From positions 6,050,822-6,114,821 of the forward strand of contig NW_003314261.1 of NCBI RefSeq assembly GCF_000143415.4: a stretch of 64,000 nt of DNA. Direction: 5' to 3'. The notes below the pieces were generated by a model. It was not told the DNA's origin and made no database searches. It saw nothing but the letters and a program-made list of their open reading frames with translations. Position numbers and translations under genes: made by a program. How positions within the stretch are numbered: the stretch's first letter is position 1; the number at the start of each line of letters is the position of its first letter. Positions 1,492-62,066 of the stretch are shown one piece after another. This stretch comes from Selaginella moellendorffii (taxonomy: Eukaryota > Plantae > Lycopodiophyta).

Positions 1492-1686
<195 letters not shown>

Positions 1687-41155: not shown

Positions 41156-42451
41156 GCCAGCGGATTTTATCCATTTACCCAGTTTTGTATTTATGCAAAA
41201 ATCAATTATAATAAAATAATAAAATGTGTTTAAAATCATACTTCTTGGCCATGGATTCAAGAAAGAAAATTCAAGGCATGTAAACGCTTTTGTACAAAAG
41301 CCTTTGCATGCCCTTTCCTGCAATTTAAAACAATAAAAAGACATGTCATTTTATTGTTTTAAACGTAAACACCCATTTGGCAATACAACGTGTTTGCCAG
41401 CACACAAAGAGCCTCCCGAGTCGTTCCCAGTCGTTCTCTTGCAAAAGCTACTGAAACCTCGTTAACCAAAACATGTTAAAGTTATACGTTATCTTTCGCA
41501 CAGCACGGACAAGAACTGCACGGAGAAATAAGTAAATTGTCTTAGAACTATTTTCTCGACTGTGTTTGTAGTCACCATACCACCCGTTAGAGCATTGGGA
41601 CGTTTTTTGTTTATGAAAATGCGATGCAAAGCGAGCCAACAGGCTGAAGTGTTGATTTGCTGGTGTTGTTCGCCATTTTTCATTTTGGTGGGAGCGTTTT
41701 ATGAATAATTTACAAAAATAATCTTAAGCCGTCTATTAAATTAGCTAGCGTATCTTGTTGTACTAAGTGTAAACTGTGCAGAACCATCACCTGATATTAT
41801 TCTCTCACATATTCACCGAATCCTTTCGTAAACACAAGTGTGAGGAAGGACAATTTGATGAGAAATCCCTTGTGTGTTTGTTCCTCTACCGAGCTTGTTG
41901 TCACTCGCTTTTTCTCTCCACCATCTTTCCTTCCACAATCGTTTGCTAGAAGCTACTAGCTTCTTTTTCTTGGAAAGATCGAGTTGGGAAACAACAGGGT
42001 GCGTGGTTTTCTTCCTGGAGAAAAAAAAACACCATTTGATCTCTCTTTGCTTTTTTTTCCAGGCGAAAGCTCCTTTTGATCCACAGGTCCACTAGCTTGT
42101 AGCTTCTTTTCCTCTCGAAGTTCTCTACTAAATGCTTGTGTTTGATCCACAGGTCTGCAATGCTGATTAAGTTTCTGGAAGAGCTGGGCTTTGACATCAG
42201 GCATCCCAGAATCTCCACAAAAAATGAAATATACTACTGGCATCGAAAATTCCCACTGCTTTTCACGACAGTTCAATCCTAGATGTGATGCAAGAGGTTA
42301 CATCGCTCGCGCAAAACGATACTTTGACGTGGAGATGCCCGCGTACAAGGAAAAGAACAACATCGCAGACTGCGAATCAGACGATGATGCTGGCCTTGAG
42401 TAAAGTTTCCATCTCATTGCTTAGAGGGTCGTTTGATGCATTCTTTCTTGA

Positions 42452-43085
42452 ACTTCTTTGCTAGAAACGGGCTTTGCGCTTTCTTCCAGTGTATTTTGGT
42501 GTCTCTGGGAACTTCATGCCCGGCTTTTATTTCTTGCGGAGAATCCAGTCGAATCCTTTCTTGTTCTTCTCGAGCTTACTTCTCTTTGCGGGAATTTCAC
42601 CTGCTGGAAGTTTAGTCTCTATGATGTTTTAGCGTACCGTTCTTGCATTGTCATCCTCGATGTCTTCGATTTCACTTCCTCCGTCCTCGCCTTTGGCTTT
42701 TGGAAGTACACTGGGAGGCCCAGATACCAGGCAGAGAAAATACTTCTTCGCGCGAGAGCTGGAACAAACTTTCAGAGCTTACTAATCCACCACAAGACAC
42801 AAGACCGCTCGAGAAGTCACAGCTAGCTGCGGAACTCAAGCTGCGCAGTGTTCTCAGGATAGATCTGGATCAGCATTTCTGCTGTCCAGGTAGAGTCTCC
42901 TCTCGCTGTTTCCTTCTTTATTTCTCTTTATTTCATGCCGGACCTGATCTTCCACTAGGTGACCAGAGCGATAAGTCGTGTCCGGGGCTGAGTAAGTTAC
43001 AAGTCATTCGTCGCTGCATATGGTATGGTTGTTTTAGATGTTTCTTTACGGCGTTATTCAATCGTCTAGCAAGAGGTGCCAGAGC
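42452..43085. pseudogene. BUD23 fragments: inverted 3' part (about 42452-42868) joined to a direct-orientation middle part (about 42868-43085)
   Basis: Matches about 30545-30008 (reverse) and 29758-30003 (forward). Introns retained; many micro-deletions. Confidence 0.9.
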
Positions 43086-43109
43086 TCCATCAAACACTCC
43101 TGGCTGCAA

Positions 43110-44560
43110 GAGTTTTAGGTAACTACAACAGACGACATGCCGGTTGCAGAGAGGGTCCTCCAGTCGGCAAACTAAGATGGATCAACGCATCACCGTCACT
43201 GGCGTTTGAATCTTCGTGTCCTGCTCGGTTCGTTGCTCTTGCTCGTGCTGCTGCTCGATCTTATCTTGAATTTGCAGACGTTTGCGTCTAAACTCACTCG
43301 AATCTACTGAGGATTGTGTTCTTGGCGCCCTCGACCAACTTAATAAATTCTTCTCCCTGGAAGAAAAGAAGCTCTTGTCAGAATCCTAGTCGATACTTAC
43401 AACATCCTGATCTGGCGCTGGAGTAGAAACGCTCCAAAGACCGCCATCGCTGCCATTCCAATTGGGAGGGCCACCACCGCCGTCCGGAATTTCTCGTCCG
43501 ACACTGAGAAATGCTAATCCAGGTGTAGTTACCTGTAAAACTATAACATTTACTGAAAGAACCACAAAAAGAGCAACTTACTTTCAAGTTGGAGTACGAG
43601 CGCTCTGTGATGAACACTGGACGTTTTAAAAACTCCACAATGGAAACATCATCTGTGACCTCTAATCCATCCCTGCCTCAAAACCAAGTTCTTCTCACAG
43701 CCAACAAAAGAACTGTATCACCTCTCAACAAGTCCGAATCCTTTCCGAATTAGTGATGGTTCTATAGCCTGCAAGTTAAAGCTAATAAGTGAGATGGAAA
43801 GCTTCATCGACTATTACCTGCATTTCCCACAAGTTCTATCTGTTCAATGTCTTTTTCACGAACTGATCGCTTCCTGCCTGTGGTCAAATTTACTATCAAA
43901 CCAGAACATGATCTGCGTACCTCTTTGATAGTGGCCTTAACACGTACTCCAAGAACGGCAGCTCCATGCACCCAGGCATCTCTGAAAACCACGCGAACAG
44001 TTTGAGTATTTGAAAGACGAGTAAGCAACGCATACACCCTGTGTTTGTCATGGCCGAGGACAAGAGGTCGCGCAGAATCATGGATACAAGCTAGCTTCGA
44101 GTCATCACTGATGGCCTGAAACAACCGAGAAAACACTAGTTCGATCAGACATGCAAATTTCACCTTCAAACAGATGCTTGTATGATGGGTCACAAACCAC
44201 CAGGCATGTTAGCAAATGTATAAAAACTGAACGCGCTAGCATCAACAAAACGAAGATCAAGTTGTTCCGCACTAACCTGTCTAGCGCAATACTGTCCTAG
44301 AAGAGGCAAATATTGTTTTGGCATATCAGCCTGCAAGAATAGCAACGATTAGAAGCTCGAAACTAAGGGTAAGCACTTTAGGAGCTGATTTGCTTGATTC
44401 CTTGCAGACTTTTAAGGTGGTTCCAGAGCACTCGGTATCTGTGATCTTGCTTGCTGGTGGCGTAGGGACGCGGATGGGGGTAGGAAACCATCCTTCACCA
44501 AGCTGGATGCACATAGAGCTGCTGCATTGGCCTTTACTAGCAATCTTGGAACTGCAAGGA
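43110..44560. pseudogene. ispD and unknown-gene fragments in alternating orientation
   Basis: Approximate matches: 43110-43505 forward to 28455-28980; 43520-44350 reverse to 28470-27430; 44372-44482 forward to 27281-27392; 44488-44560 reverse to 27252-27185. Confidence 0.9.
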
Positions 44561-44589
44561 AAAAACGAATATGGGGAGGTTGATGCAAC

Positions 44590-45235
44590 TCACTTGTCAT
44601 TCTGTCAACAGCCAACAGCAAGTTTGTCCTTCCATTTCTTATCTTGGAAAGCGACTCCATTGGAGATTACCAAGACCTCAATCATCACCCATATCTGCAC
44701 GAAGCAAGGAACACACAATCGACGCAAATATAGAGGAAGGATACCATACCATCATCGCAAAGATGAAAAGCTTGAAGTAACTTGAAGTGATTGCGGAAAA
44801 CTCCCGTTAAACTCCCGTTCGTCGAGCTGGAACGGTCAACATCTCTATCCTCATCATGGAATGTAAGCTCATGCTCAAATCACCTTAGCTGATCGATACG
44901 AGATGGCAGCGGCCCTCTCAGCACTAAAATAGTCGTATAGACATGCTTCCAAAACAACAAAGTAAAGAGCTGCCGTCACAACGACCTGCTTTCAAACGTC
45001 AAAATCAGCTCCGCTCTGAGAGAATCGAAAGAGCGAAACACTTACTTTCGAACTTAGAACTTTGCTGCTGAAGAACAAATGACGGTAAGTGCAAGACAAT
45101 ATCAACGAAAACAATCTGGAAAACACGATCCATCATCAAAAGAAGAAATATAGAAGATCATCGATCGGAATGACAGGCTTACAATCGGCTCGCACTCCAC
45201 ATATACATCAGCGACGATCCACTTTTTGGCTGAGA
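44590..45235 (-). pseudogene. Inverted ARV1 fragment
   Basis: Reverse match to about 26830-26060 with deletions. Confidence 0.88.
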
Positions 45236-45264
45236 GCAACTCACACTGTCCATGATCTTCAAAA

Positions 45265-45920
45265 CGTAGGCCGTGTCGTCTATTGTTCTGGATGGGGAGG
45301 AAAGTGTCAAGAAAGAAGTAGAATCCTCAAGAATCTAGCCAGTTTGATTTGTTACCACCAGCACGAAAACCTCTTCCCTGGCGAATCAATCAGTTAGAAA
45401 GAACACAAAACGAAAGAGATGAAAAACACTTTTTGCAAAGAGAGAATGGTGTTACCTAGACATCGGCAAAGATTGTTAAAACCCAACCAGAGAGGATCGC
45501 CGGGAGGCAATCCAGCCTGGAGCACAAATTCACGTTTTCCAGTTAGAGATCAACAGCAGAAACGAGAAAAACTACAGACCTCCTTCAGCAGGCTTGCACA
45601 AAAGAGAGCACTCAAGGGAGTTGCTCGCGGGGCCGATCTTCAAGAAAAACATGATGAGCGGGAAGTTCCATGGGAGCTCGAGCAAAGTGTACGCGTGGTA
45701 AGGGCCGTCAATTTTGGTCTTGCCACAGATTTGGTCAACGAAGCCTGTACAAGGTCCTCAGGCACTTCATTATTTGATCCTACCTGAACGAAGGAGCCGA
45801 AGGGACATCGGCAAGTCCAATGGCTTTCCATTGTCCAGAGTCTCGAGAGCTGCAAGCTCGTCAAGGTGATGCTCCAGCAAATCAGCAAACTTGAGAAGCA
45901 TTCGCCCCCTGGTCTGCGAC
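45265..45920 (-). pseudogene. Internally deleted ALDH2 fragment
   Basis: Same-orientation match to pieces of about 62295-63800, e.g. agacctccttcagcaggcttgcacaaaagagagcactcaagggagt. Confidence 0.88.
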
Positions 45921-45969
45921 AAACCAGTGATTACCGCAGTCAGAGCATATGAAAGCCGGATTTTTTTTT

Positions 45970-46530
45970 TCTTTTACGTACCGCATCAACGAAGCACTTT
46001 GTACAATGACAAGTCCTCTAACAGACTGAGCAAGAAATAAACACGTTTAGTTCCACGCGCTATGCTAACGGAAAACAAAACTTACCACATCGTCATGCAT
46101 GACTGGCTCGTAAGTTTTCTCCAGGTGTTTCTGAACCGTCTTATAATCGTCACTTTCCTTGTCCACGCAAGTCATAGAGCTCTTGAGCTTGGCGTAACGA
46201 TCGGATAAAGGATCGTTCAATGTGTCCCCACTCCTATCACCTAGGATATGCAGAGATTTCAGTACACTTGCGCCCTGGAGACAATATTAGATATCATCAA
46301 TCTCGATTTGCAAAAGTACCAGTTGAGATGAAGGAACCAGCGAAAACCACTTACTACTAAAATCCAGGCACATTTGGTCGTGTTTCTTGCTGTCAGAGTC
46401 TGCGAACTCACTCCCGCCTGCCAATGCAGTTTGTTAACTCATAACCTCCTGAAACACGAGCTTACATTGCTTGAAGTGAAAGAGGCAGCTCGGGCGAGTT
46501 GATTCCCATCTCAAACATTGCATCCCTGCT
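45970..46530 (-). pseudogene. Inverted PARP3 fragment
   Basis: Reverse match to about 36545-35830 with deletions. Confidence 0.88.
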
Positions 46531-46534
46531 AATA

Positions 46535-48420
46535 CCATATCCACTACCAACTGACAAAATTTCCTAACGAGGGCGACATGGAGAAGTCCATTGTCTTCAA
46601 GAATCTTTCTGCTGCAGCAGACAACTCCGCCTGAAAAGTTGGAAAGCGCGTAAGTTCCTATGTGAGCCCATATAAAACAAACATAATGACATTTTACCGT
46701 CTCGTTTATCACAAGCTCTTTGAGTAAAAAATGCACCTGGCAAACAAAGTACAAAATGCTCTTCAACTCAGAAGTATAACAAACCAAATCTTACAGCATC
46801 TACAGCCACCTCTCAAATAGCTGGCCGAGACTTCAATAAGTCACCGATAAGCTTGCTCTGGAGCAATCAAATGGCGCTGATAGCCATCAGCTTCTGCGAT
46901 AACTTTCCGACCGTCTGTATGGAAAGATGTCTGTCGAACGGCAGCTTCAGGAAGCAGGTGATCAAACACGTTATGGATTCGATCTCCTCCAGGACATATG
47001 ACACGATACTCAAAAGTAAGTCAATTAAAAGCTTCCTCATACAAAAAAATTTACCCTCCATCAAAATACGCCTTGAAAACATGGTCAAACGCCCTGCAAA
47101 GCTCTAACACGGTATACAGTTGCCCCTAAAAATGCAAGTACTTCAGCTCCAGATATAAGGAAGCCAGCTAGTCCTTTATCTTACCCCTGCGTCCGATGCA
47201 ATAGGTCTCCCAAGTCGGTCAAGTTCTGCTTCTAGTTCGGTGATGGTTTTGTTTATAAGCGACTGAATACTCGGAATTCGTGCCTTTATCACTGCTTCCA
47301 AATGCTGCAAAAGAGATTTTTCAGAGCGGCCACAAAATGTATCACAATCACCTTCGAAAGAACTCTTCCAAGATATTCAGAGCCCATGCGGCTTGCCAAA
47401 TGCCTGTAATCTGGACTTGAAGCGAAAAACTCACGTTCCCTTCGTCTGGCGACGATCATGTCGACACTTTTATTTATGTCTGCTTGTGATCGATTGACAA
47501 CACCGATCCAGGGGCGTTGCAATCGATAGGAATGACCCTCCAACACCTGTAGAAAATCAGATTCAATCTAAACTGAAGAGTTTAGTAAACATAAAGATAC
47601 TTGCATCAATAGCTCCCTTATCCATCAACTGTGTGAGAACTCCAAACGTTCGGTCGCCTAACTCAAACGTTCTAATTCATTAGAACATTGCCATGAAAAC
47701 AATATAATCTCACCGATCGACTTCGCGTGCAAGTTTAATTGCGTCTGATGTTGCTATATCTTGATTGGCAGGAGAGATGGCCAGAATGATCGTATTTTCC
47801 TGAAGGTACAAGATGTTAAGCACCGCAAAGGTTGAATAATAACCAGAAACCAACCTTTTCAACATAATACCTGACCATGTTTTCAATCTCAGCTTTCAGG
47901 CTGCCCGTCTGCAAAGCAAAAGGAAAAGAAAAAGCTAAAACATTTGTCATGAAAATTCTTACCAACAGCAATTTTCGTTAAGCCCGCAAGGTCTATCATA
48001 GTCAAATTCACGACTGCCACTAAACACAAGAAGTTAAAACTCGTCGTGGAAACAATCAACCATGAAACAAACCATTTCGAGAGTAAATGCTGAGATGGAT
48101 AGGAACCGGCGAGATTTGTTTGCTACGTCCAGTGCTAAGACAAATAGAAAGCGCAAGAGCTAAGTCCGCCAGAAGAAGTTTCTTACCAAAGTCCGTAAGT
48201 TTCTTCTTAGGTAGATGCAAAAACTCCGCCCTCTGTCCTGATCACAATTCCTTCAAACAGAAGCCGTTATCACCAGAAGCCAAGTAAAAAGAGAAGCACC
48301 GACGATTTCCCGGAACAATCCCAACCAAGCCCGAGGAATAAATCTCATTCTCCACTAAAGAAAATGCGAGACACTCACCTGGCCTCCCACCACACCCCAG
48401 CACCGTGCAAGCTCGCTGCA
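46535..48420 (-). pseudogene. Inverted DRP1 pseudogene copy
   Basis: Reverse match to about 33060-30920. ORF 47289-47546 is nearly identical to 32019-32276; frameshifting deletions elsewhere. Confidence 0.92.
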
Positions 48421-48514
48421 TACTTATTTTAGTCGCGTTCGCAGAGAAAGAAGACATCTTTCGCACGAAGCAAAATAAAACCCTCGTCACAGCTTGGAAA
48501 CCCTAGCGAAGTTG

Positions 48515-50487
48515 ATGGGCTCCCTGGTAAGATTCTTTGCTCGTTTTCGTTGCCCCGGTGATAGCACCATTTTGTGTGAAGGGCGAGCATTGGCCGAATG
48601 CTGCGATACGCCGGGTCGATGCTTCGGCGATAAAGGAATACGCTCAGGCAAACAAGCATGGATTTCAGTTGGAGAAGAAGCCGATCAATCCAAGTCGGCA
48701 ATGCTTCGCAGGAAAAATCTATGGCTTGAGGCTCATAGTGGCGCTCCATGCCCCAGCAGGTGAGCTCAGTTTCCGTAGATGCTTTAGTGAGTTCCATGCC
48801 TCGCAGGTGATTTCTACAGCTTCATCGGATGCTTCAGCGAGTTCCACCATGTCTTCGTAGAGAAAGCTCTTCCGGCGCACCTCGGTATCAAAGATTACGC
48901 CCGGATTCTCGGCGAGGAGCTTGCGACGTTCGCTGAGACGTATCACAGTCTCCTGCCACCACCCCGCAAAATGGAATCCATGCATGATGCTCTTGAGGTT
49001 CTGGAGGAAATCCGGCAGGATGCACGCGATTGGGAGAACGACGTCGCCAAGCTCTATCCAGTTTTGGTTCTTCTCCCGGTGGACTTTTTGCCTGGGAACG
49101 ATGGCACGTTTGGCAACTGCAGCGGCCTCACTGACGACACCGAGGAGCCCGATGGTGTTCCCATGGACGAGCTGTGTGCGGAGCTGATTGATCCAACTAA
49201 ACTACCGATCTTCACTGTCACTTGGGACGTGAGCTCGCGCAGTGACAAGGAGAAGTTTATGAGGCTGTCCGAGTATGAGAAGAGAGGCCATCTTGTGCTC
49301 ACCGTGAGACCTCCAAGCTTCCATCTTCCAACCGCTTGTCCGAGGAGCCTTTCCACGTACCTCTACCTGTGCCTGGCAAAGAAGCCATTCCTTGTCGAGC
49401 ACTCCAATGCCGGTGAGCTTTCCTTTCTTTCTTTTGTATGGCAGATGCTCACGGTTTTTTTCAGACCTCAACTTACCTTTGGTGGACTGGAACCTCCACA
49501 CTGTGTTTGGCAGCGGCGTGGACGACTTTTTGCGATCTACGGTGATGTGCGACTTGGATGTTGGGCTCAATGAGGGTGAAGCTGCGAAGGTTGAGTCCTT
49601 GAGGCCGCTGTTTATGGATCTGGACGATGCTCTCGACTTGGAGTTGTGGACGAAACGTCAGTGCAGGAAGAAAAGTGGCTGGTTTTCTCTCGATGCAGCT
49701 GGAGGGGACATCGAGACTTCACACTTGCCGTGGCCGATCAACAAGCTGGTGGCATGGACAAGGAGAGCCAGAGCAATGACCAGGCTTGGCATCAACTGGA
49801 AGAACTCAGAAGCCAGACAAAAAGAGGTAACAGTGAGAGCTTTCGAGGCTTTTATTTCTTTCTTTATGGCTTAAGATTGATTTCATTTCAGATCTATGGT
49901 CGAGCGTTGCGCGCTTACAAGGATCTCTCCTCTGTAAAGCAACTGAACAAAGATTCAAAGTACTTGTGTGGCATGTAAGTTATAGTGTAGCCTTTCATGT
50001 TTTTCTGAAATCTTCTTTTGTTCTAGGCGGCCCACGAGCCTCGATGCAATGCTCCTCGCTCACATTCTATTTGTGAAGCGCATCTCTCTTGTAAGTACCA
50101 AAAGCATATGATTTTTCTCTATGATTCATGTTGTTGTGTCATTGCTCTTAGGAGAACTCCATTCTTCGAGCTGCGCTTGAGTTGGAGCATCCGGAGCTCA
50201 TCGAGTACTCAGACCTTGGAATTCTTCTTATCGCCTGGCAGTGTGTCTGTGGATTGGGGACGGGATCCGCCGAGGTGCAAGGCAAGCAGACCATGGATGA
50301 CGGGAAGCAGCTCAAGAAGCAAAAGGCTGGCGGTGGTGGCGACGCCAAGAGCCGTGAGCAGGACGGTAAGAACTTCCACGAGTTTGTGGACAAGCTCAAG
50401 AGCAATGTGTCGGACGAGGAGGTGAGGCCGATTCTTTTCGAGAACGCTCAGGAGATGGATGCTTCCAGTTCCGTTCATCAGCATTGA
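48515..50487 (+). CDS. Chimeric METAXIN-like protein (546 aa): unknown N-terminal region, metaxin GST-like core, PARP3 exon-1-derived tail; 7 exons
   Basis: Exons 48515-48526, 48582-48759, 48807-49412, 49465-49826, 49892-49974, 50027-50090 and 50152-50487 splice at GT-AG into one open frame. Metaxin-like motifs VRPPSFHLPTACPRSLSTYLYL, LDDALDLELW, LPWPINKL, RLGIN..NSEARQKEIYGRA, RPTSLDAMLLAHILF. Confidence 0.65.
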
Positions 50488-51475
50488 TGGCGAATGGTTT
50501 TCCTTCTTTCGGTTGGTCTTTTCTAGCTTTTCTCTTGTCGCTTGCATTTTTAGTGCTCATCAAATTATGTACGGTCCGCTAGAGCCCTGTGGCGGTGCGC
50601 TGAAGTTCTATCCTGTGGACATTTTGTGTTGCTCGTCGTAAATCATGCAATTCTTCTAGGATGTTGTGTGCGACGCGTGGGTGGAATCTTTCAAAGCAAT
50701 ATCACGTCTCATAGGTGAAATGAGTGGGGACACATTGGACGATCCTTTATTGGATCGTTGCCCCAAGCTCGGCGATTATAAGATATACCTGGAGAAAACT
50801 TACGAGCCGGTATGTTTTCCGTTAGCACAGCGCGTGTAACTAAACTTTTGCTCAGTCTGTTAGTATCATTGCTGAAAGCCGTGCACCATCCTTCGAAGAA
50901 ATTGACACGCTAAACAACGAAGTGCTTCTTTGGTGGGGTACGTAAAAGATTCTTTTTCCTGCTCTGACTGCGGTATTTTAGGAACAAGCGCCTGCAATCT
51001 TATCAAGGGAATGCAGCCAGCAATCTACAACGCTCCTGTTCCTGGCTACATGGTATTAGAGTTGTCCAAATTTGTGCGAGGTAACCTCTCATTTACTTTT
51101 CTAGTTTGGCAAGGGTCTCTACTGCACCGGCGCGTCGTGCAAAGCAGTTAGCTACGCCTTCAGTGGAGTGGACGGACCAGTTATACTGGCCTTGGGCGAT
51201 GACATGCTCGTGTTTCCAAAGGCAGGAGAGGTAAGACTCTCACCTCAAGAAAGCAGCGTTCTCATCTTAATGCCATCCATTCACAGGCAATCAAGGCCTT
51301 CGGAAATAAGCTTCCGGATTCATCTGAGTAGAACAACACCACGGCACTGGTCGGGACGATTGCATACTCGAGTACAACGAGTATGAGACAATGTGATTTG
51401 TTTTCTAGGTGAAGTTGCAGTTCATAGTCCAAGTAGAGAAATGAGAGGACTTTGTTTGCTAGAAAGAATCTCAAA
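50255..51475 (+). pseudogene. Direct-orientation, heavily deleted PARP3 copy (its first exon forms the tail of the chimeric ORF)
   Basis: Matches about 33970-34335, then jumps to 35580 through a shared AAGTTC and continues in pieces to about 37250. Confidence 0.9.
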
Positions 51476-51936
51476 AAAAGAAAAGAACCTTGAGCCCGGC
51501 GCTTACCGAGTTTTCCAGCTTGAGCATATTCCCATCTTAGAAAAAGAATTTATGACGTAAATAGCTTTAGATAAAAGCACAAATGAAGAACAAGCTATGG
51601 TTTCTTCTTCCTGTTTCTTTCAGAGTAGGAAACATATATTTAAGAGTTAGCCTGAGTTTCATATACCAGTTCTAGCATTGACTAAGTAAATTATTAATTA
51701 ATACACAACTTGTAATTTGGATTGCAAGATGATCTTAGTTGTTAGATTGCAATCCAAACACACACTGCCAGGTGATCAGAGTAATTCCAAGGTTTGCATA
51801 GTTGATGAGCCAGAACTCATCAACTATGACTTAGATGCTCTAAGTCAAGTAGGAGCTTTAGGTTTTTGTAGTAGTTTATATTTGTCTAACAGAAGCTCTA
51901 GATGTTTCATAGTTATCACATTTTCTAGAAGGGAGG

Positions 51937-51940
<4 letters not shown>

Positions 51941-51984
<44 letters not shown>
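51941..51984. repeat. (TA)n microsatellite
   Basis: Directly visible. Confidence 0.97.
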
Positions 51985-51985
<1 letters not shown>

Positions 51986-52353
51986 CCCTAACTAGGTAAT
52001 ATTAATTATAGTACTTTAGCATATAAATTGTTTATTTAAATTCAATCTATCCATTTTTGTATATGGGTTTAAACCTCAATTAATACTACTATAGAAAACC
52101 AGGATCAAATTGTCACCTTAAGTTCTCAACTAAACTTTTGAGAAAGTAAAACGTGTTAAGAACTGTAAAATCTGTTTTATTGGCTTCTGCAACACACTAC
52201 AAAATTATAACTTGTCATTCTATGACTAGTTGTTTTTTAAGGTCTTGAAGGCCATGATCTAATGCAATGGGATAAGGAATTGATATGTTGCACAATACAA
52301 AGAGCAAGGATGACTAAAGCAATGGGATGGAGCTATTTCCAAAGGCAGGAGGA

Positions 52354-52874
52354 CTATCCGTACACTTTAGCGCCTCGTGCAATAGCATCTTGGATCCTTG
52401 CATTTATTTCATCCTGGGTCTCCTTCCAACACCACCGGGCTTTACGCCAATCTGGTTTCACCTCCCAATCTGTAGATTCAAGCACCTCACCATCCTTAGA
52501 GACCTAGAACAAGAAGAAACATAAGTTGAATCCTCTTGTGCCCAACTGAAAAACATACACCAAGAGTGCTCTTGGTGTAAAAGAATGGATCAATGGCATA
52601 CCTTCTGCACATTGGAAAACATATACTGGTTCCTCTCAGCATCCTCAGCATCATCAAGTATTACTGCAGTGCAACGCACGCCCTCTTCATCTGCGGGGTA
52701 AAATCTCCCCCCAGTCATGGTAAATCCATCGCCAAAATCCTTAAGACTCATGATCAGCGGGAAATAATCCCTCTCTGTGACCGGATCATGGACCATACTC
52801 TCCCCAAATGTGAAATCCACCACGTATTCCTGGCCTATGCGCCTCAGCATCCCACGCACAACCTCCGCGTCCAT
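52354..52874 (-). CDS. Orphan acidic protein of about 140 aa, 2 exons
   Basis: Exon 52874-52602 (MDAEVVRG...FSNVQK) joins in frame through a GT-AG intron to exon 52503-52354 (VSKDGEVLESTDWEVKPDWRKARWCWKETQDEINARIQDAIARGAKVYG*). Telo-box-like repeat just upstream. Confidence 0.55.
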
Positions 52875-55085
52875 GCTCACTAGCCCTAACCCTAAGTCAC
52901 AAATTTAGAACACGATCCATGTCCCATGGATGAGCAAGATCCTTGAAGAGGCCCAGTCTGTCCTTGTGGGCGCTGAAGATCACAACAATTGAGAACGGTA
53001 GAAAAACGGGAATGGCTGGCGCTGGAACGGCATCATAGTCGTGGGATTCAGCCATCGAAGAGAACGTGGCGTTTTCCTCCAGTAGTGCATGTCGAACTTT
53101 CTTTCTCGCCCCTGGTCCGTGTCATCTCTTGCCTGTAAATCTCCACCTCCCTCCTCGCATCCGCTGTTGTGCATCTGCAGCTTCTTGTAACCCAGGATCC
53201 ATGGCTGGGCAATGGAAGGAGCGATCCCAAGGCAAGTTCTTGCTAATTGTCGCAAGCGGAGAATGCAAACTTAAGGTCATTCTTCGATGCAAGGAAGACG
53301 GTTTCTGGCTTTGACAATCATGCTGGTATCAGCTTGTCTTATTAGTTTTCAACTATTTTCATTCTTTCAATATAGTTACCATGGATTGACGTCACTAGGC
53401 TAACGAGAGTTTTGCTGCTCTGCAGAGAACAAATCCTGTAATCGGCTCTATAGCCGATGCATAATACTCGAGGTGTGATAACCAACAGAGGTGTTTTGGC
53501 GACTGCTCACGTTCTGAACTTTGTTGCAGGTTATTGTCTTGTATTTGCGCTCGAAAAGAAAAGCTTTGGAGGACACTGAATCACGCCAGATGACGGTGAA
53601 ATAGACTACGTATTAAGCTCACTTAATCGAGCTCTTCTAGCAGATGAACGAGTCCTTGGATGGTATCCTCTTCCTCCTGGCTTTCATGCATGGTGTTAAG
53701 CGTTCTTTCTCTCGATCAAGTTAATACATTTGCAACGCAAGGCTGTGCTCTTAAGAGCAAACACTGCATAATACCTCGACAGTTGGCATTTTCCTGTAAT
53801 ACCTATAGCTTGTGTGACATGTTCAAGTCAGATGCCCTCAAAGAATGATGTGGGATGATAACGAAGACGATAGACTCGTGATCGAGCAGGACATCGCAAA
53901 GGTTCTTTTGCGAGCGGTGGGTGATGGGAGTCCTCTGAACTGCGTTCTCTAACTGCATGCCACTCACTCGCTCTCTCAGCTTTCTCACGCTTCGCTGCGA
54001 ATCATGATAAGTTTAATTCCACGGCGACTGCATTTTGAAGCCGCCTTCGAACCTTGCGGGCGGACTTCTCTTCCAGCAAGAGTCCTACAGGCAGCTGATT
54101 TGTCCGTCTCAATTGCTACTGGTAGTTCCGTCACTTAGCCTGAACCAGAAAGCTCAACAGGATCTGGCGGTGAGAAGCAAGATGGTAGGAACTCGTCCTC
54201 AGTGCTCCCTCGTCGGAGGCATTTTGACCCAGACTTGCAGTGAGCGGCTTAGCACTTTGAAGCTCAATCTGCACATTATAGACCCATCGCCTAAACAGAT
54301 ACTCAGCAGCATAAAACAAAATGCAGGCGGCGTTTCAAAACTTAGTTTCGTGAATGAGCTCAAGCACAGTTCTCCTTCTCCTCGTAATTCCAGACCCTGT
54401 TCACGACCCAGACGGACATATCGAGCTTAGACAGCCAGCAATTCTGGCCGAGTGTCGGGGGTACAGGTTTTCGGAGGTGGTAGCGCGAGAGACCAGCTCT
54501 CGATAATACTATGGTGAAGCGGATCGGCTTACTTGCTATCAGCGACGTAAATGGGGTCAAATGGGTGAAGGACAACTCCTCTCGTACAATGGTCTGATTG
54601 TCCATCCCAACCTAGCTTGGTTATCCAACACAATTAGCACGGCTAAAAGCGAAAACACGAAAAATGAATAGCCTACATAAATGCTGGCACTTTGAAATCC
54701 CGTCGGACTGCTTTCTTCTCGCGCGCTAATCTCAACGCAGCAGCGTCATCGTCTTCGTCCTGAGTTGGCTCAAGCAGTGCGGAGGAGGCATGTATTGCTG
54801 GGAAGTTTGGTTCGTAGGAGAGAGGATGGAAAATCCTGCCATGGAGTGGACCTTGGGAACTGTGAGAGTCAGGCCGCTGCTTGCTTCCCCCGGAATACGC
54901 GATGAAGGAGTCCAGATATACGAGTCCTTGGGTGTCGTCCAGGTTTTCGTGCACAGTATCACTCTCGAACTAGATCGTCAGGAGCTGCACAGGTTCAGCT
55001 GTTCAGTACAAGTAGTTTGTCATTGAGGATGTAGAGGCAAGAAAGCCAGAATTAACATCTGTTGTATTTCAACAAGCCTGTGTCT

Positions 55086-55868
55086 CTATTCTCGACGAGC
55101 CTGAACTGACCACTCGCGCACGAACACCAATTCTAGATCGACTTTCAGTCGCTCCTCGTTTCTCCGCTTATACTGGTGGGAGAAGTTAACCTTCATCAAT
55201 CGTCGCATAGCCTTGAGGAATCTTCTCTTCTTGGCGAGTACACTCTTGCTCGCATCAACCAGAAGCATCTCTCCACCACAAAATCTGTCTCTGCTGCAGG
55301 CCTCCGCAATGCCATCCAGTCCTAGATCGATGACCTCCTCCAATGTTGTACCTCTCTGCCCCTCCACCGGGTTCTCCAGAATCCTCCTGGCTGGTACACT
55401 CCCACTCCCTATAGCAAGGATGGGATTCTCACTGCTCAATTTGTAAACTTGAAATCCTGCGCCAAGATCACGCACCATGAAAAGCTCCGAGTCGTTGTAT
55501 ATGAAGAAAGATGCCAGGTATCCTGTGATGACGCTTTGGGCAACATCCGCTTGGCACTTCAAAAATTCTGCTGCTTCCTCCAGCCCAAATTCTTCTTCTT
55601 TTGCCTTGATCTTCAAAAGCTTCGCCATGATGTCGCGCTCCTTGACGTTCCCTGCCGCGCCCAGCATGAGCCTTGGATTTTCACAGATCTCCACTATCTT
55701 GAAACCCCGTGATTCTCTCCATACTTCCTCATCTTCACACTCTGTCGTCGTCAAGCTATCGAAAAACACGACAAACCCAGAAGGATCCTCGCACTTCATG
55801 GCAATGCCTATAGTCCCTCTCTCGATTGGCTTGCGACTACAAAAGGACCTTGCCAGCCCTGGCAGCAT
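55086..55868 (-). CDS. Highly divergent proteasome beta-subunit-like (Ntn-hydrolase/threonine protease) protein, intronless; 5' end abuts a gap
   Basis: G|TIGIA..GFVVFFDS..FKIVEI..LGAAG..AA.FL..AIGSGS..A..ILE..T.EE.I.L..I.EA..RDRFCGG follows the proteasome beta motif order. Confidence 0.65.
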   Translation of the reverse strand: MLPGLARSFCSRKPIERGTIGIAMKCEDPSGFVVFFDSLTTTECEDEEVWRESRGFKIVEICENPRLMLGAAGNVKERDIMAKLLKIKAKEEEFGLEEAAEFLKCQADVAQSVITGYLASFFIYNDSELFMVRDLGAGFQVYKLSSENPILAIGSGSVPARRILENPVEGQRGTTLEEVIDLGLDGIAEACSRDRFCGGEMLLVDASKSVLAKKRRFLKAMRRLMKVNFSHQYKRRNEERLKVDLELVFVREWSVQARRE

Positions 55869-55909
55869 CGTGGCGACAAGCTCCTTCGACTTGGGAGGTG
55901 CTGACCGCC

Positions 55910-56318
55910 NNNNNNNNNNNNNNNNNNNNNNNNNNNNNNNNNNNNNNNNNNNNNNNNNNNNNNNNNNNNNNNNNNNNNNNNNNNNNNNNNNNNNNNNNNN
56001 NNNNNNNNNNNNNNNNNNNNNNNNNNNNNNNNNNNNNNNNNNNNNNNNNNNNNNNNNNNNNNNNNNNNNNNNNNNNNNNNNNNNNNNNNNNNNNNNNNNN
56101 NNNNNNNNNNNNNNNNNNNNNNNNNNNNNNNNNNNNNNNNNNNNNNNNNNNNNNNNNNNNNNNNNNNNNNNNNNNNNNNNNNNNNNNNNNNNNNNNNNNN
56201 NNNNNNNNNNNNNNNNNNNNNNNNNNNNNNNNNNNNNNNNNNNNNNNNNNNNNNNNNNNNNNNNNNNNNNNNNNNNNNNNNNNNNNNNNNNNNNNNNNNN
56301 NNNNNNNNNNNNNNNNNN
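55910..56318. other. Assembly gap (N run)
   Basis: Ns. Confidence 1.
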
Positions 56319-56994
56319 CCGCGCACAGAGATTGCCGTGCCCATGCCGCTACCACGAGCTCACACAAGATCCTTCGCATCGTGCTAGCTCTCGGGGCAAG
56401 CATCTTTCTAGTAAATTAAGAACCCTAACCCTATTCATTTTGTATATGTTAAGCTCAAATTTTTGGGTTTTCCTGTCAGATTTTTCTATAGTTTTTTGGT
56501 TTGATTAAAAAAATTAGTGAATATATTTAAAATATGATTAAATATTCTAGGATATCTTACCATTTAATGGAAATCTTGTATTTATAATTTATAAACATAT
56601 ATAAACTTCACTTATTTATAACTTATTTATAACTTATAAATGTATAAATATATAATGTATATATATATTTATAACTTATAAACATATAAGTGTTTTTCTT
56701 AAACACTTTCTAGTGTATTCCTTTTTATTCTACCATGTAATGGTTGATATGCAATAAGATTAATCTTGTGTTTATAGATTATTAGCATGTTTATAATTAT
56801 AGACATTTATTTGATCAATTGGATTAATAAGTAATAATAACATTACTATTGAGCAAACCAAGCATTACTATAGAAAATTATTTAATATATTTAGGAAATA
56901 TTACTGTAGCACACCCATAATATAATTATTTTACATTAGTTTTAATAACTCATATAGATTAGCATGTGGTTATTAAATATTTTAAGAAAATTAT

Positions 56995-57135
56995 TACATA
57001 ACCATTTATATAGTGAAACATGGTTATATAAACATGGTTATAACCATGTATGTTATAACCATGTTTATGTCACTATATACACATGTATATAGTGAAACAT
57101 GGTTATATAAACATGGTTATATAGTGAAACATTTT
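56995..57135. repeat. Short tandem/inverted repeat cluster (ATATAGTGAAACATGGTTATATAAACATGGTTA)
   Basis: Unit repeated near 57008, 57087 and 57119, with an inverted copy between, in AT-rich DNA. Confidence 0.7.
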
Positions 57136-57609
57136 CCTATATAATTTTTTCATATTGGAAGTTCTCACATTATAGTTTAATATAGTTAAAATCTGGAGAA
57201 TCACATAAAAAACTTATTGCTAATAAAACATTAAATGATCCTGTAATAAAATTTTATCCATAATGAAATGGTACAATTAAGATGTTAACATATTTAAATT
57301 TAAAAATTATTTATTACATATTCTTCTTTATTTGCATATACGAATTATTTCAGATCTTATTATAACTACGCTTTTTTTGAAATATTTTTGTAACTGAATA
57401 ATTTCTAAATTTTAAATTTGGATTTGCATAAATCTTAATGGTTTGGGAATAAGACATATGATGCAAGAATTCAAGAAAGCTATTATGTATACTAAAGTTG
57501 TGAGGGCCAAGTGTATTAAAAGAATCCATCATATATTACACCAAAGTGAGAAAAATTAATTAGAAAATTGTAGATAGATAATTAATATTCTATAATGCGT
57601 GTTATAAGG

Positions 57610-57952
<343 letters not shown>

Positions 57953-60059
57953 TTATATGCATGTATGTATAAGGTAATATGCTAATTATAGTACTATAAC
58001 ATATTGACTATTCATTTGGAATTGAATTTGGTCCATCTATTATTATATATAAACAGGGTCTAAACCTCCATTACTATACTTATTTCCATATCATAAACAC
58101 TCACATTAATGGAGATAATGGGTATTGTAATCTGTCCCTGGAGGGTAAAGTATTTTTGAAAGTGCTTTACTTCAGTATTTGGGATTGTATTTTTGTTTCT
58201 ATTCCTTTCTTTCTTTACTACATTTAGATTTATATTAGCTTTTTGCCAAATCTAAAATTCTAGCTATTATTGTGCTTAGATTTATTTTTCCTTCTGATCT
58301 TTATTACATTCTTTTTTTCCACTATGCCACGTCACACTTGAGGTTATTAATATTGCTTTGTTGAATTAAGCTTTTAGTGTTATAGGGTGTGATTATATTG
58401 GTGTGATACTTGTTCTTAGAATATTGTGATCTCTAGCTTTCATGAGATGTGATTACATAGCTTTTTCTATTCTTGGTGTTTTGTTATATGATATAGAATG
58501 TGATTATGATATCAATTAAAGAGATATAAATGATATAATTTGGTTATTGGAGAATGTTCAAAGATTGAATTTATATGATTGAATGGATTTTGGATTGTGA
58601 TAAGAAAATTTATTATTATGGAGATAACTTTGGAAAAAATTAAAGATTTTGCAAGGTAAGTATCAACCCTTTAATCTACCATCTAATCCTTTGCCTTTAC
58701 CTTTTACTCTTTCTTAACTTTTTTTTTATTTCTTAGCTTGAGCTATTTTCTTATATTCCTAGTGTTCTTTCCTCATCTATAGTGTTTTCTTCTCCACTTT
58801 TATGATTATCATTCTCAATCTAGTGTTGAGTTAAATGTTTTTTGTCTTCCTTATACTAATTTAAATGTTAAGCATATGCGTGTAGTTGAGAATCTTGATT
58901 TTGTTTTGTTAGTAAAGTCTTTGATCAGTTTTAGTGTTTTAAAGATTGAGTCACTTTGGCTAGAGTTTCGAGTTGAGTGCATATCCCCATTTGTGAGTCC
59001 CATTGAGAGCTTATACTTTATCATTTTTGCTGAAGAACTTATGTGTTCACTTGAGAGTGTGGATATTTTTATTGATTTTCTTATTTCAAATGTTGAATTG
59101 TGTGTTAATGTGAATCTTTTGATTATATTATGGTGACTAAAGCATTTTATGACAAGAAGTCTTTTATTTTCTAAATTTTAAACACAATAGTAGAATTGAT
59201 TGGTACCTGAGAGGAAAGTGTGAGCTTGCCATACCTTGCTCGGCAAATTGAAAATGTTGTGAGCAAATTTATAGTGATGTGGAACTTGATATAAAGGAAT
59301 TCCTTTATGCTTTTTTTGTTATGCCAAAACGTAATCTCATCTCCTAAACACACCTCATCACAGTGCTTGCCCAACACAGGCATTTAGATCAAGCAAGGCT
59401 TATCTTTAATTGAATCCTATAGTAGGATCTTTGCTCCTATTGGCTAGCATTTGCCAATAATATATAGTTTAGTGATATTTTTCAGCCGGAGCTAAGGCCA
59501 AGTATATATACAGGTAATTTTTAACTTTTATTACTAATGTTCTTCTTTTTATTTCCCCATTTTTGCATTAACAACTATTAAAAATTCTTCTTCATCCACT
59601 TTTCTTTCTTTTACTTCTTTAATTTTTTTCACTTTCTATTATTTACTTAAATGCTTGAAACTTTTTTTTCTTCGAAAGAGAGGATGGATGGGAGTCCAAT
59701 CCTAACGATGGAGTGAGGATGAACAAATACAATAATGAAGTGATGATAAATAATATAAATTGTGGAGTGAGAATGAATATAACTAAGTCCTAATAGAATA
59801 TACAACCTTATGTAGTAAACCTAAACAAATATGATAGTGGAGTGAAGTTCAATATAAATGGCAGAGTAAAGATTAATATAATAAATCCAACTAAAACTAA
59901 TGCTTTAAAACTTTTTTCTTTTTCAAGAAGAGGGGATAAAAAGGATATGAAAAATAAATAGAGTGAATTTAACCTCCCATGTATGGTGCTATAGGAAAAT
60001 GAGGGTTCTGAGTCTGGGTCTTGAATATTAACTGAAGGAAAGACCCAGAGTGCAGCACG

Positions 60060-61590
60060 TAAAATAGAGTTCTCCTGAGAGCATGAAACGCAATAGGAAT
60101 CATAGAGAAAAATCATATGCTTTTAGTACTTACAAGAGAAATGCACTTCACAAATAGAATGTGAGTGATGAGCATTGCATCAAGGCTTGTCAGCCACCTA
60201 GAAACCAAGGAAAGATCTTAGAAAAAGAATGAAAGCCTACATTGTAACTTATAGGATCCTTGTTCACTTGTATTACCAAGGAAATATCCTTGTAAGCACG
60301 CAATGCTCGACCATAGATCTGAAATGACACATGGTGATTTCAAAATTTCAATTATAAAGAACTCTTGTTACCTTTGTTTGTCTGGCTTGAGAGTTCCCCC
60401 AGTTGATACCACTCATTGTTTTGGCTTTCCTTGTCCATGCCACTAGCTTGTTGATCGGCCATGACAAGTGTGAAGTTTAGATTTCTCCTCCAACTACATC
60501 AGAAGAAAACCAAGAACTCTTTCTCTTGGATTGGCATTTGGTCCATAGCTCCAAGTCAAGAGCATCATCAAGATCCATGAACAGTGGCCTCAAGGACTGA
60601 AACTTAGCAGCCTCAGCCTCACTGAGCCCAACATCCAAGTCGCACATCACTGTTGATTGCAAAAACTTATCTACGTCATTGCCAAACGCAGTTAATAGGT
60701 TCCAGTCGATTATAGGGAAGTGGAGGTTGTCTAGAAAAAAACCATTAATGATAATCCTACAGAAAGAAAAGAAGGAAATACCAGCATTGGAGTGCTCGAC
60801 GATGAATGGCTTCTTGGCGAGGCATAGATATAGGTATGTGGAAAGGCACCTTGGACAAGAAGTTGGAAGATGGAAGCTTGGAGGTCTCACGATGAGCACA
60901 AGATGGCCTCTCTTCTCATACTCGGACAGCCTCACAAATTTCTCCTTGTCGCTGCGCAAGCTCACGTCCCAAGTGACAGTGAAGATTGGAAGTTTAGTTG
61001 GATCAATCAGCTCCGCACACAGCTCGTCCATGGGAACACCATCGGGCTCCTCGGTGTCGTCAATGATGCCACTGCAGTTGCCAAGCGTGCCATCGTTCCC
61101 AGGCAAAAAGTTCACCGGGAGAAGAACAAAAACTGGATAGAGCTTGGCGACGTCGCTCTCCCAATCGCGTGCATCCTGCCGGATTTCCTCCAGAACCTCG
61201 AGAGCATCATGCATGGATTCCATCTTGCGGGGTGGTGGCAGGAGACGGTGATACGTCTCAGCGAACGTCGCAAGCTCCTCACCGAGAATCCGGGCGTAAT
61301 CTTTGATACCGAGGTGCGCCGGAAGAGCTTTCTCCACGAAGACATGGTGGAACTCGCTGAAGCATCCGATGAAGCTGTAGAAATCACCTGCGAGGCATGG
61401 AACTCACTAAAGCATCTATGAAAACTGAGCTCACCTGCTGGGGCATGGACCGCCACTATGAGCCTCAAGCCATAGATTTTTCCTGCAAAGCATTGCCGGC
61501 TTGGATTGATCGGCTTCATGGACTGCTTCTCCAACTGAAATCCATGCTTGTTTGTTATTCCTCTAACCCATGAGCTCGCTAGGGTTTCCT
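60060..61590 (-). pseudogene. Inverted paralog of the METAXIN-like gene; 5' half near-identical, 3' half disrupted
   Basis: Matches about 48495-50175. In-frame stop at 60477, deletions at about 60240-60420 and near the 5' end. Confidence 0.8.
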
Positions 61591-62066
61591 ATAACCCTTT
61601 CATGAGCATAGGCAGTACAGTGTAAACCCTAATTTGCAATATGAGAGTAGATATTTTACGACGACGATATTTTTGAGAATTTCATTCAGTCTATGATCAT
61701 TGCCACCGTGCGTTGGACGACGATTTTTCGTTTGAGTGGACATCTATGGTTTTTATGCAAGATCCACTTTCTCCGCTCCTCGCTCGCTTGATTCCGCTCA
61801 AACGACAATAAGTTTCCTACAAATTTTTTCCTCATTACTATATCTTTACATGGGCTTCACACTCCTCCCTTTTGGAGATACTTCTTTAAATGACCCCATG
61901 CATTCCTGGCTTGCACGAATGCGGGCACGGTAGGTAGCGTGCGCTATCGTTCCCGCAACGCAATCTCTGGATCATACGATTAGAGCCTTCCCTCCCCCAA
62001 GGAAAAGAAAGAAAAAAAACTCAGGAACTAGTACCACTTTCATAGCGACGAAGAGGTGCCAAAGAT

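Follow-up and report, generated by a model that had tools for sequence, protein, structure and literature searches.

A 9-kb mosaic stitched from eight neighbouring genes in Selaginella moellendorffii, whose order suggests an old, patched chromosome break

Plants reportedly carry out synthesis-dependent filler DNA repair, the subject, it is said, of 'Patching gaps in plant genomes' (Wicker et al. 2010). L1 twin priming, for its part, gives a two-arm geometry with the 3' parts outer and the 5' parts inner. Cases of plant chromoanagenesis are formally documented in the wake of haploid-induction crosses (PMC4461816) and of irradiation (PMC8423247), and three reports (PMC8195485, PMC12065846, PMC5059474) demonstrate RNA-templated break repair experimentally. 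In Drosophila, 'tinkering loci' assemble fragments from distant sites through ectopic recombination at transposons (bioRxiv 10.64898/2026.08.09.743762). Unlike the mosaic described here, the documented plant chromoanagenesis does not concern old, fixed inserts of kilobase scale and, in contrast to the tinkering loci, our mosaic is made of neighbour-derived fragments with no transposon sequence recognised by eye at its junctions.

Extent and composition of the mosaic

The host DNA is from Selaginella moellendorffii and all coordinates are positions in the window, i.e. the whole 64,000-nt stretch that was analysed. When 42452-51475 was compared with the remainder of the window, BLASTN gave 24 alignments (E ~6e-06 to 0), and a self-comparison of the window flagged 22 of 29 repeat pairs on the patch; a further pair (30004-30545 versus 42872-42441) reaches it just left of 42452, where the initial annotation had begun it. 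Short-word searches and junction inspection then set the edges at 42441 (left) and ~51472 (right) and raised the count to at least 27 pieces. Together these searches bear out the proposed patchwork of neighbouring genes and confirm that the 9-kb mosaic stitched from eight of them is real: pieces of ARV1, ispD, a LOC112351060-like gene, BUD23, DRP1, PARP3 (twice), ALDH2 and a metaxin-like gene account for ~96% of 42441-51475, while ~330 nt are without a donor match in the rest of the 64-kb window. All cargo originates within ~16 kb. To its left, the TPT gene has its 3' end ~1.3 kb before the start of the insertion (9.03 kb); to its right, ~230 nt separate the insertion from the metaxin-like gene, again at a 3' end.

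Gene names are supported by Pfam matches on single open frames (Arv1, IspD, Aldedh; WBS_methylT plus methyltransferase for BUD23; Dynamin_M/GED for DRP1; PADR1/WGR/PARP_reg/PARP for PARP3; GST_N_4/GST_C_6 for the metaxin-like gene). The initial annotation had counted at least 11 segments, which was low as to pieces, although many of these segments are one collinear copy cut by later deletions; the genes that it named all hold, with the metaxin-like gene missing from its list unless meant by 'the unknown gene'.

The mosaic consists of two divergent arms in which nearly all pieces have the sense strand of their gene facing outward (the strand rule). Its features and donors are as follows.

26063-37254, plus strand: left donor block with ARV1, ispD, the LOC112351060-like gene (minus), BUD23, DRP1 and PARP3
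42441-42872, minus strand: outer end of the left arm, copied from the 3' part of BUD23 (donor 30545 to 30004, its end past the stop codon at 30523-30525 adjoining A-rich donor sequence)
42868-43085, plus strand: in-place flip of a BUD23 segment (donor 29758-30001), which makes it one of the two exceptions to the strand rule; both junctions lose at most 3 nt, each with 2-nt microhomology
43086-43110, minus strand: BUD23 piece (donor 29755 to 29716), ending 7 nt upstream of a 3' splice site
43111-43506, minus strand: copy of the LOC112351060-like gene (donor 28440-28977), intron present, in direct orientation because the parent is a minus-strand gene; tblastn with protein P0002 matches 43507-43185 on the minus strand
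43507-43521, no strand: 15-nt filler, 13 bases of which compare with donor 29775-29763 and agree at 12 positions; this source adjoins another breakpoint (chance ~0.004, hand-estimated post hoc)
43522-44371, minus strand: ispD copy (donor 28471 to 27776, then 27644 to 27408) with an internal loss of 145 nt
44372-44482, plus strand: ispD piece flipped in place (donor 27280-27392), stopping at the 5' splice site of the modelled ispD intron 27390-27451
44491-44595, minus strand: ispD copy (donor 27255 to ~27121), its initial 71 nt 100% identical to the parent and the remainder decayed; filler in it compared with ispD exon 1/intron 1 gives p=0.025
44596-45233, minus strand: ARV1 copy (donor 26829 to 26063), starting 1 nt beyond the stop codon and ending 4 nt upstream of the intron 1 3' splice site
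45276-45923, minus strand: ALDH2 copy (donor 62326-62576 and 63273-63800, direct), ending 10 nt upstream of a 3' splice site
45932-46537, minus strand: copy of the PARP3 middle (donor 36580 to 35816), starting at a 3' splice site or close to it and ending 12 nt upstream of another
46535-48470, minus strand: DRP1 copy (donor 33055 to ~30860; ATG at 30891) with a 1-kb low-divergence tract; inner end of the left arm
48471-48648, no strand: centre, where the arms meet, with a 14-nt match upstream of the metaxin-like gene (48496-48509 = 61589-61576), a 59-nt piece across DRP1 intron 2 (48524-48582 = 31139-31197) and ~105 nt without a donor match
48649-50256, plus strand: copy of the metaxin-like gene (donor 61554 to 60049, then 51810 to 51750), splice sites preserved and exon frames open
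50255-51472, plus strand: PARP3 copy in three collinear pieces (donor 33971-34334, 35580-35665 and ~36180-37254; ATG at 34009, stop codon at 37220-37222); outer end of the right arm
51473-51489, plus strand: A-rich tract (A7 G A4 G AA) that follows the PARP3 3'UTR copy without a gap, not in the parent there; it could be part of the original target
51704-51860, minus strand: detached last-exon piece of the metaxin-like gene, ~230 nt right of the patch (P0001 tblastn 51809-51704)
60049-63800, minus strand: right donor block with the metaxin-like parent and ALDH2

Order, junctions and decay of the pieces

The regularities in strand, gene ends and splice sites come from a single locus and each was spotted after inspection, with transcript starts and poly(A) sites taken from start and stop codons, i.e. 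from coding sequence only. Of the non-collinear blocks, 13 of 15 follow the strand rule (binomial 0.0037, uncorrected). In the left arm, ~5,640 nt obey it versus 329 nt that do not, minus-strand parents (LOC112351060-like, ALDH2) being copied direct and plus-strand parents inverted; in the right arm all 2,905 nt obey. Two flips and the 59-nt central piece violate or complicate it. Moreover, the arms stop at gene ends: their outer ends overshoot the stop codons of BUD23 and PARP3 by 20 and 32 nt respectively, and their inner ends lie 26-36 nt before the DRP1 ATG and 38 nt before the PARP3 ATG, an outcome that would arise by chance with a probability of ~2e-7 for all four (40-nt window). Six of the nine gene-level pieces begin within ~105 nt of a stop codon (p ~1e-4), none of the ARV1-ispD, BUD23-DRP1 and DRP1-PARP3 spacers was copied into the mosaic, and, of the 7 jumps that the left arm makes from one gene to another, 4 are placed 4-12 nt upstream of a 3' splice site (p 2.6e-4, post hoc). 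Chromosomal order is kept among the ARV1 to BUD23 pieces and among those from DRP1 to PARP3. Pieces this orderly suggest an old chromosome break that was patched by copying active nearby genes, and the word 'scrambled', under which the locus had been introduced, is misleading.

Several finer claims of the initial annotation hold up. The left half does walk backwards through 30545-26063 with local flips (29758-30001, 28440-28977 and 27280-27392), donors lie on both sides in mixed orientations, and microhomology is seen at several junctions: AAGTTC joins 34334 to 35580 at 50603, and AGGT/ACCT unites two ispD 5' splice sites near 44160. Overall, junctions carry 0-6 nt of microhomology (blunt joins included) or fillers of 8-66 nt, one of which, a 13-nt insertion, is templated from another breakpoint. 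Introns are retained, as the proposed DNA-based copying predicts, with 0 of the ~30 predicted introns inside copied pieces precisely removed, and CpG persists as claimed: its observed/expected ratio is 0.84 in the patch and 0.82-0.90 in the parent genes, unlike the AT-rich repeat regions (0.14-0.32).

The insert is old and has shrunk through small deletions. Its copies differ from their parents by 8.5% substitutions and more than 150 indels; deleted outnumber inserted bases 11:1 and the 118 deletions have a mode of 8-12 nt. Within continuous pieces, divergence swings from 0-3% to 14-24% (p 2e-9, 1e-19) and therefore calls for gene conversion or several ages. We read the 71-nt identical ispD tract as a probable case of recent gene conversion, while the PARP3 triplet (two copies and the parent) is star-like, with 18, 26 and 19 private changes, which argues that at least two blocks may be of equal age. 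Given the uneven divergence, a single age for the whole insert is an assumption rescued via gene conversion.

Most of the insert is now dead sequence. Its right arm carries an open reading frame, a metaxin-PARP3 chimera, and the metaxin-like parent is broken by an in-frame TAA, a 17-nt exon deletion and a cut at 60049; at least one further metaxin-like copy, found from P0001, lies on another scaffold. Judged from its sequence, the chimeric frame is a candidate gene that may have outlived its broken metaxin-like parent.

Possible origins

To our minds, the chances are about even that sense-strand copying of nearby transcription units, in multiple jumps, mended a break starting from either end. 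A chromosome break at the site would have been healed via DNA synthesis off both broken ends, each of which would have copied sense strands from the 3' side of a gene to its 5' side and hopped between genes: the left end along BUD23, the LOC112351060-like gene, ispD, ARV1, ALDH2, PARP3 and DRP1, the right end from PARP3 to the metaxin-like gene. The two extended ends would then have been united mid-insert with short fillers. Later on, the insert decayed by small deletions, underwent two or three small flips on the spot and was probably overwritten in patches by gene conversion from the parents. As template, either the R-loop-displaced DNA strand of active genes or unspliced nascent RNA may be envisaged. 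An RNA template would require more than 30 introns in nine transcripts to be all unspliced, which is hard to accept; a displaced-DNA template would require R-loops 1-2 kb long. As for break repair itself, an eroded and split inverted duplication of 10.5 kb predicts the retained chromosomal order too, and the strongly uneven divergence as well as the failure to find a target-site duplication (flanking direct repeats being limited to one non-adjacent 7-mer) also count against it.

A fuller version of the break-repair reading would see in the mosaic a natural, fixed footprint of transcription-associated repair of one break, with both ends extended for kilobases, at least nine active units copied, a preference for jumping at points a little upstream of 3' splice sites and a metaxin-PARP3 chimeric gene outliving its parent. 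This is a tentative proposal that we hold for possible rather than probable. If it is true, and the same strand and gene-end rules are found in other gene-fragment mosaics of this genome, it would point to a general, transposon-free route to co-oriented mosaics.

Multi-gene collinearity in 30545-26063 and 36580-30860, a strong deletion bias able to create many apparent 'segments' and uneven divergence are what one would also expect from a stepwise, transcription-independent origin: an inverted duplication of ~26-36.6 kb plus separate ALDH2, metaxin-like and PARP3 copies, made one or several times and followed by deletions, small inversions and a transposition, with the regularity of strands and gene ends put down to chance. 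We consider this rather unlikely, since intergenic spacers must coincide exactly with both of the biggest losses from the first block as well as with the block boundary, one in-place flip must match the sole opposite-strand gene, both outer ends must land within 32 nt of stop codons, and the star-like PARP3 triplet puts at least two blocks at the same age. A capture by transposons (Helitron, Pack-MULE or Pack-CACTA type, with eroded ends or as two head-to-head elements) is improbable. Co-oriented, intron-bearing fragments in each arm do resemble Helitron cargo; yet the search for Helitron or MULE ends that the initial annotation had proposed found no Helitron hairpin with CTRR in 41-53 kb on either strand and no inverted repeat pairing the two mosaic edges, the edges themselves are BUD23 and PARP3 3'UTR copies, the cargo is all local and CpG is undepleted, unlike in the transposon regions of the window.

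LINE-type retroposition, combining twin priming with template jumps among cellular RNAs, would match the two arms, in which 3' parts face the edges and 5' parts the centre, the A-rich tract after the PARP3 3'UTR copy and the T-rich start at the left edge. Full intron retention comes close to refuting it, its templates are all cis-neighbours rather than abundant mRNAs, and the expected target-site duplication was not found, all of which makes this origin very improbable. Nor do we think it at all probable that the patch is maintained as a regulatory locus whose antisense or small RNAs act on the neighbouring genes, along the lines of the sense and antisense RNA that the initial annotation had envisaged: going by geometry, read-through from flanking genes into either arm would yield antisense to nine gene pieces, and a PARP3 inverted repeat (arms of ~300 nt, 4.5 kb apart) lies inside the patch, but substitutions and deletions have accumulated as in unconstrained DNA and CpG is normal in patch and parents, which therefore bear no footprint of long-term RNA-directed methylation. 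Finally, an assembly artefact is scarcely credible. Scaffold N runs do occur at 5954-6925 and 55910-56318, but the patch is without N, at least 27 junctions would all need to be chimeric, and copies this divergent from their parents are therefore not misplaced parental reads.

Comparison with known systems

Like the tinkering loci, the mosaic is a kilobase-scale locus rich in duplicated pieces of genes, which were copied as DNA together with adjoining non-coding sequence, and a possible source of composite genes. Helitron and Pack-type mosaics share its co-oriented, intron-containing fragments of several genes and the potential for chimeric transcripts; our locus differs in having no termini, no sign of mobility and cargo from immediate neighbours only. 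L1 twin priming and chimeric retrocopies likewise show two arms that diverge, A-rich sequence at one of the outer ends and jumps from one transcript template to another, whereas the mosaic retains all introns, draws on local templates only and has no target-site duplication that we could see.

FoSTeS/MMBIR, chromoanasynthesis and plant filler-DNA repair have in common with the mosaic intact donors, many nearby templates, both orientations and junctions that carry either microhomology (0-6 nt) or short fillers, which here include a templated one. Thus, the template-switching family named by the initial annotation fits, but a single event or chromoanasynthesis is more than can be demonstrated where divergence is so uneven. 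The mosaic also departs from this family in that strand is set by the direction of the gene rather than of the chromosome, and in that its breakpoints sit at the ends of genes and close to 3' splice sites, with spacers skipped.

This brings us to RNA-templated or transcript-associated double-strand break repair. In the published cases (PMC8195485, PMC12065846, PMC5059474) it is the broken gene that regains sequence, from a few to tens of nucleotides, whereas the mosaic took 9 kb from nine other units with all introns present. A role for RNA would be conjectural. What the two nevertheless appear to share is that templates are confined to transcription units near the break, with strand set by the gene (in 13 of the 15 blocks, spacers being absent and gene ends inferred from coding sequence), and that the new strand is antisense to the gene, as laid down by synthesis running 3' to 5' along the transcript.

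Extent and composition of the patch

The patch, a mosaic at positions 42441-51475 of pieces from eight neighbouring genes, had been taken in the initial annotation for a patchwork of neighbouring-gene copies, and 24 BLASTN alignments between it and the rest of the window bear this out. In a whole-window self-comparison, nearly all repeats involve the patch. Combining BLASTN with short-word searches and a reading of each junction, we assign about 96% of 42441-51472 to at least 27 pieces, each a copy of part of a parent gene that keeps its own position in the window; extending BUD23 homology to the left of 42441 gave nothing significant.

Gene order and annotation of the window
25919-26828, plus strand: ARV1
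26997-28515, plus strand: ispD
29140-28545, minus strand: the unknown gene (uncharacterised, LOC112351060-like)
29195-30525, plus strand: BUD23
30891-33555, plus strand: DRP1
34009-37222, plus strand: PARP3
37367-37438, minus strand: tRNA gene (Rfam, 67 bits), between PARP3 and GT17
37681-38787, plus strand: GT17
to about 41152, plus strand: TPT
42441-51475: the patch
51704-51860, minus strand: detached metaxin-like last exon
between the detached last exon and the metaxin-like body: about 8 kb with other genes, an N run and AT-rich repeats
60049 to about 61600, minus strand: metaxin-like gene body
from 62067, minus strand: ALDH2

Single open frames of the window gave plant-type Pfam matches to STIG1, GT17, TPT, IspD and PARP with PADR1. 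The sole models returned by protein word searches, SELMODRAFT_422696 and LOC112351060, are both from Selaginella moellendorffii and both sited on one 1,296,709-nt scaffold, which most likely is the other haplotype; the two exons of LOC112351060 match the window at 100% and 97.6%. The tRNA gene, GT17 and TPT are the nearest left neighbours of the patch, and none gave any piece to it. The unannotated 1.3 kb from TPT to the patch has two copies of the motif TTGATCCACAGGTC with a spacing of 65 nt (42078-42156), and an open frame at 42191-42403, ending 37 nt before the patch, is without homologue in the protein word search.

Patch and parents differ by 710 substitutions in 8,321 aligned columns (8.5%), so the copies cannot be misplaced parental reads. 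The copies also carry 118 deletions (1,021 nt) versus 35 insertions (91 nt), with a secondary mode of deletion sizes at 8-12 nt. As initially annotated, CpGs persist, the observed/expected ratio being 0.84 in the patch and 0.82-0.90 in the parent genes versus 0.14-0.32 in the AT-rich repeat regions (1-13000, 19000-23000, 56319-60000), which presumably are methylated transposon DNA. RIP-like mutation can be dismissed because transitions are not dominant (386/714) and CpG is kept.

Copying with introns retained, another early claim, is likewise upheld: none of the roughly 30 introns inside copied pieces has been precisely removed. Introns were modelled by a simple dynamic programme and by mapping of the LOC112351060 protein, and the models, which are approximate (in-frame introns are missed, and DRP1 introns 1-2 were set by eye), served for coordinates only; exons were searched singly by reference, and spliced models were joined for no search. 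The sole candidate for precise intron loss, at 31372-31411, is really a 40-nt exon deletion flanked by CACTGG.

Order of the pieces in the two arms

Our main new result is the ordered build of what had been called scrambled: the patch follows gene direction and gene ends, in two divergent arms that meet at its centre. The left arm (42441 to about 48470) holds, in sequence, BUD23, the unknown gene, ispD, ARV1, ALDH2, PARP3 and DRP1, with gene pieces all sense on the minus strand apart from two small flips (29758-30001 and 27280-27392, together 329 nt), the only exceptions to the strand rule. Here, minus-strand parents (the unknown gene, ALDH2) were copied directly and plus-strand parents inverted, so the strand of a piece follows the gene and not the chromosome. 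The right arm (48496-51472) consists of the metaxin-like gene, a 59-nt DRP1 piece spanning intron 2, and PARP3, all sense on the plus strand. In both arms, genes are traversed 3' to 5' on the way from the outer edge to the centre.

With gene and transcript ends inferred from coding sequence, the outer edges of the patch overrun the stop codons of BUD23 and PARP3 by 20 and 32 nt, and the inner ends precede the start codons (ATG) of DRP1 and PARP3 by 26-36 and 38 nt, respectively. An A-rich tract that the parent lacks follows the PARP3 edge. None of the spacers ARV1-ispD, BUD23-DRP1 and DRP1-PARP3 was copied into the patch. For these rules, noticed post hoc at one locus and hence to be discounted accordingly, the probabilities are 0.0037 (uncorrected) for strand, which is kept in 13 of 15 non-collinear blocks, about 2e-7 for the four gene-end coincidences in a 40-nt window, about 1e-4 for the 6 of 9 gene-level pieces that begin no more than about 105 nt from a stop codon, and 2.6e-4 for the 4 of 7 left-arm gene-to-gene jumps that lie 4-12 nt upstream of a 3' splice site.

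Jump ends adjacent to 3' splice sites
29716: BUD23
26063: ARV1
63800: ALDH2
35816: PARP3

A fifth such jump, in ispD, was withdrawn when its apparent filler was recognised as decayed sequence of ispD exon 1 and intron 1. Nor does a stop at lariat branch points account for the clustering, since the copies stop 4-12 nt upstream of the splice site, closer than the likely branch points picked by eye in the introns, at 18-28 nt.

The initial annotation had envisaged that the locus, if transcribed, could make sense and antisense RNA. Given this geometry, read-through from the flanks would yield RNA antisense to all pieces, and outward transcription from the centre would yield sense RNA. That CpG is normal in patch and parents alike speaks against RNA-directed methylation over a long time.

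Junctions, age and the metaxin-like pair

True rearrangement junctions come in three patterns: overlaps of 0-3 nt (GA and GC at the clean flip of 29758-30001), the 4-6 nt microhomologies already recognised in the initial annotation (ACCT between two 5' splice sites, AAGTTC in PARP3), and fillers, 8-66 nt long. Among the latter is a 15-nt filler with 12 of 13 nt identical to sequence adjoining another breakpoint (29775-29763); exact-word searches with fillers gave mostly noise, a metaxin-upstream 14-mer and a weak DRP1-upstream match alone being useful. At small deletions, mean microhomology is barely higher than at random placements (1.09 versus 0.75). Two fillers, 44562-44595 and 45234-45275, have the 9-mer GCAACTCAC in common, and on the sense strand both carry GTGAGT-like 5' splice-site motifs just upstream of retained 3' splice sites, where short hybrid introns could form.

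As for transposon ends, a scan for inverted repeats pairing the patch edges showed only internal PARP3 arms and a (TA)n run, and a strict scan of 41-53 kb found no hairpin followed by the CTRR of a Helitron end. The edge sequences are BUD23 and PARP3 3'UTR copies, which also explain the edge repeat TTTGCTAGAAA once considered a target duplication.

The two PARP3 copies and their parent form a star-like triplet (18, 26 and 19 private substitutions in 263 columns), so both PARP3 blocks are of about the same age, roughly 7-10% per lineage. Within continuous pieces, divergence steps from 10.2% to 2.7% in the DRP1 block (p 2e-9) and from 3.4% to 18.6% in the metaxin-like block (p 1e-19), and in ispD a 71-nt tract 100% identical to the parent adjoins a decayed stretch. 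We take such stretches of low divergence to reflect gene conversion by parental sequence; they may also be later additions to the patch.

The metaxin-like parent is a pseudogene in this haplotype. Its body (60049-61554 in alignment) is interrupted by an in-frame TAA (GAG in the patch copy), lacks 17 nt of exon sequence through a deletion, and is cut at 60049 with loss of the last exon, the missing piece lying 8.2 kb off at 51704-51860. Other genes, an N run and AT-rich repeats fill the intervening 51860-60049; in the protein sequence of SELMODRAFT_422696, on the other scaffold, the last exon is continuous with the rest. In the patch copy, exon frames are open and splice sites kept, and it is in frame with the PARP3 5' region, whose PADR1_N match is still there. 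The parental defects and the open copy together place the copying before the break-up of the parent, and, judging from sequence, the copy may have replaced it.

Differing sites of the pair are asymmetric, AT in the parent and GC in the patch at 106 versus 44 (p 4e-7), a bias absent from every other block. The open chimeric metaxin-PARP3 frames of the right arm (48791-50487) contain a conserved GT-AG mini-intron at about 49414-49466; their divergence from the parental sequence differs widely between exons, from 3% in exon 1 to about 19% in exon 2. A perfect palindrome with 10-nt stems (51800-51826: AGTTGATGAG, a 6-nt loop, CTCATCAACT) lies within the detached last exon, at the position where that exon ceases to match the patch copy.

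Proposed break repair and comparison with known systems

Gene-fragment mosaics are usually ascribed to transposons or to random duplication debris. At this locus, with every donor visible, the assembly rules are plain to see: gene direction sets the strand, pieces stop at gene ends, spacers are skipped and introns kept. These rules fit two-ended break repair from nearby transcription units. A break in the spacer that now holds the patch would have been followed by synthesis from both broken ends, each copying the sense strand of nearby transcription units with several jumps, and the two extended ends would then have been joined in the middle. The template may have been the displaced DNA strand of R-loops; this would explain why introns persist and donors are local, but the R-loops must have been long. 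Alternatively, it may have been nascent RNA; this would explain the A-rich tract and why piece ends coincide with transcript ends, but more than 30 introns must then have stayed unspliced. Experiments have demonstrated break repair templated by RNA, for short patches only (PMC8195485, PMC12065846, PMC5059474). The main alternative is a stepwise history purely at the DNA level. If the rules are chance, the patch would still be a well-resolved local duplication followed by deletion-driven pseudogene decay.

If the rules that suggest two-ended repair applied across the genome, they would link break repair with local transcription, explain co-oriented mosaics without transposons and provide a natural case bearing on transcript or R-loop templating of repair in vivo. 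The locus is also an example of gene turnover, in which the chimeric copy has kept its frames open and the parent has suffered a stop, a deletion and a split. As a type of locus, its nearest published analogue is the Drosophila 'tinkering locus' (bioRxiv 10.64898/2026.08.09.743762), which, unlike the patch, draws distant fragments by transposon-mediated ectopic recombination.
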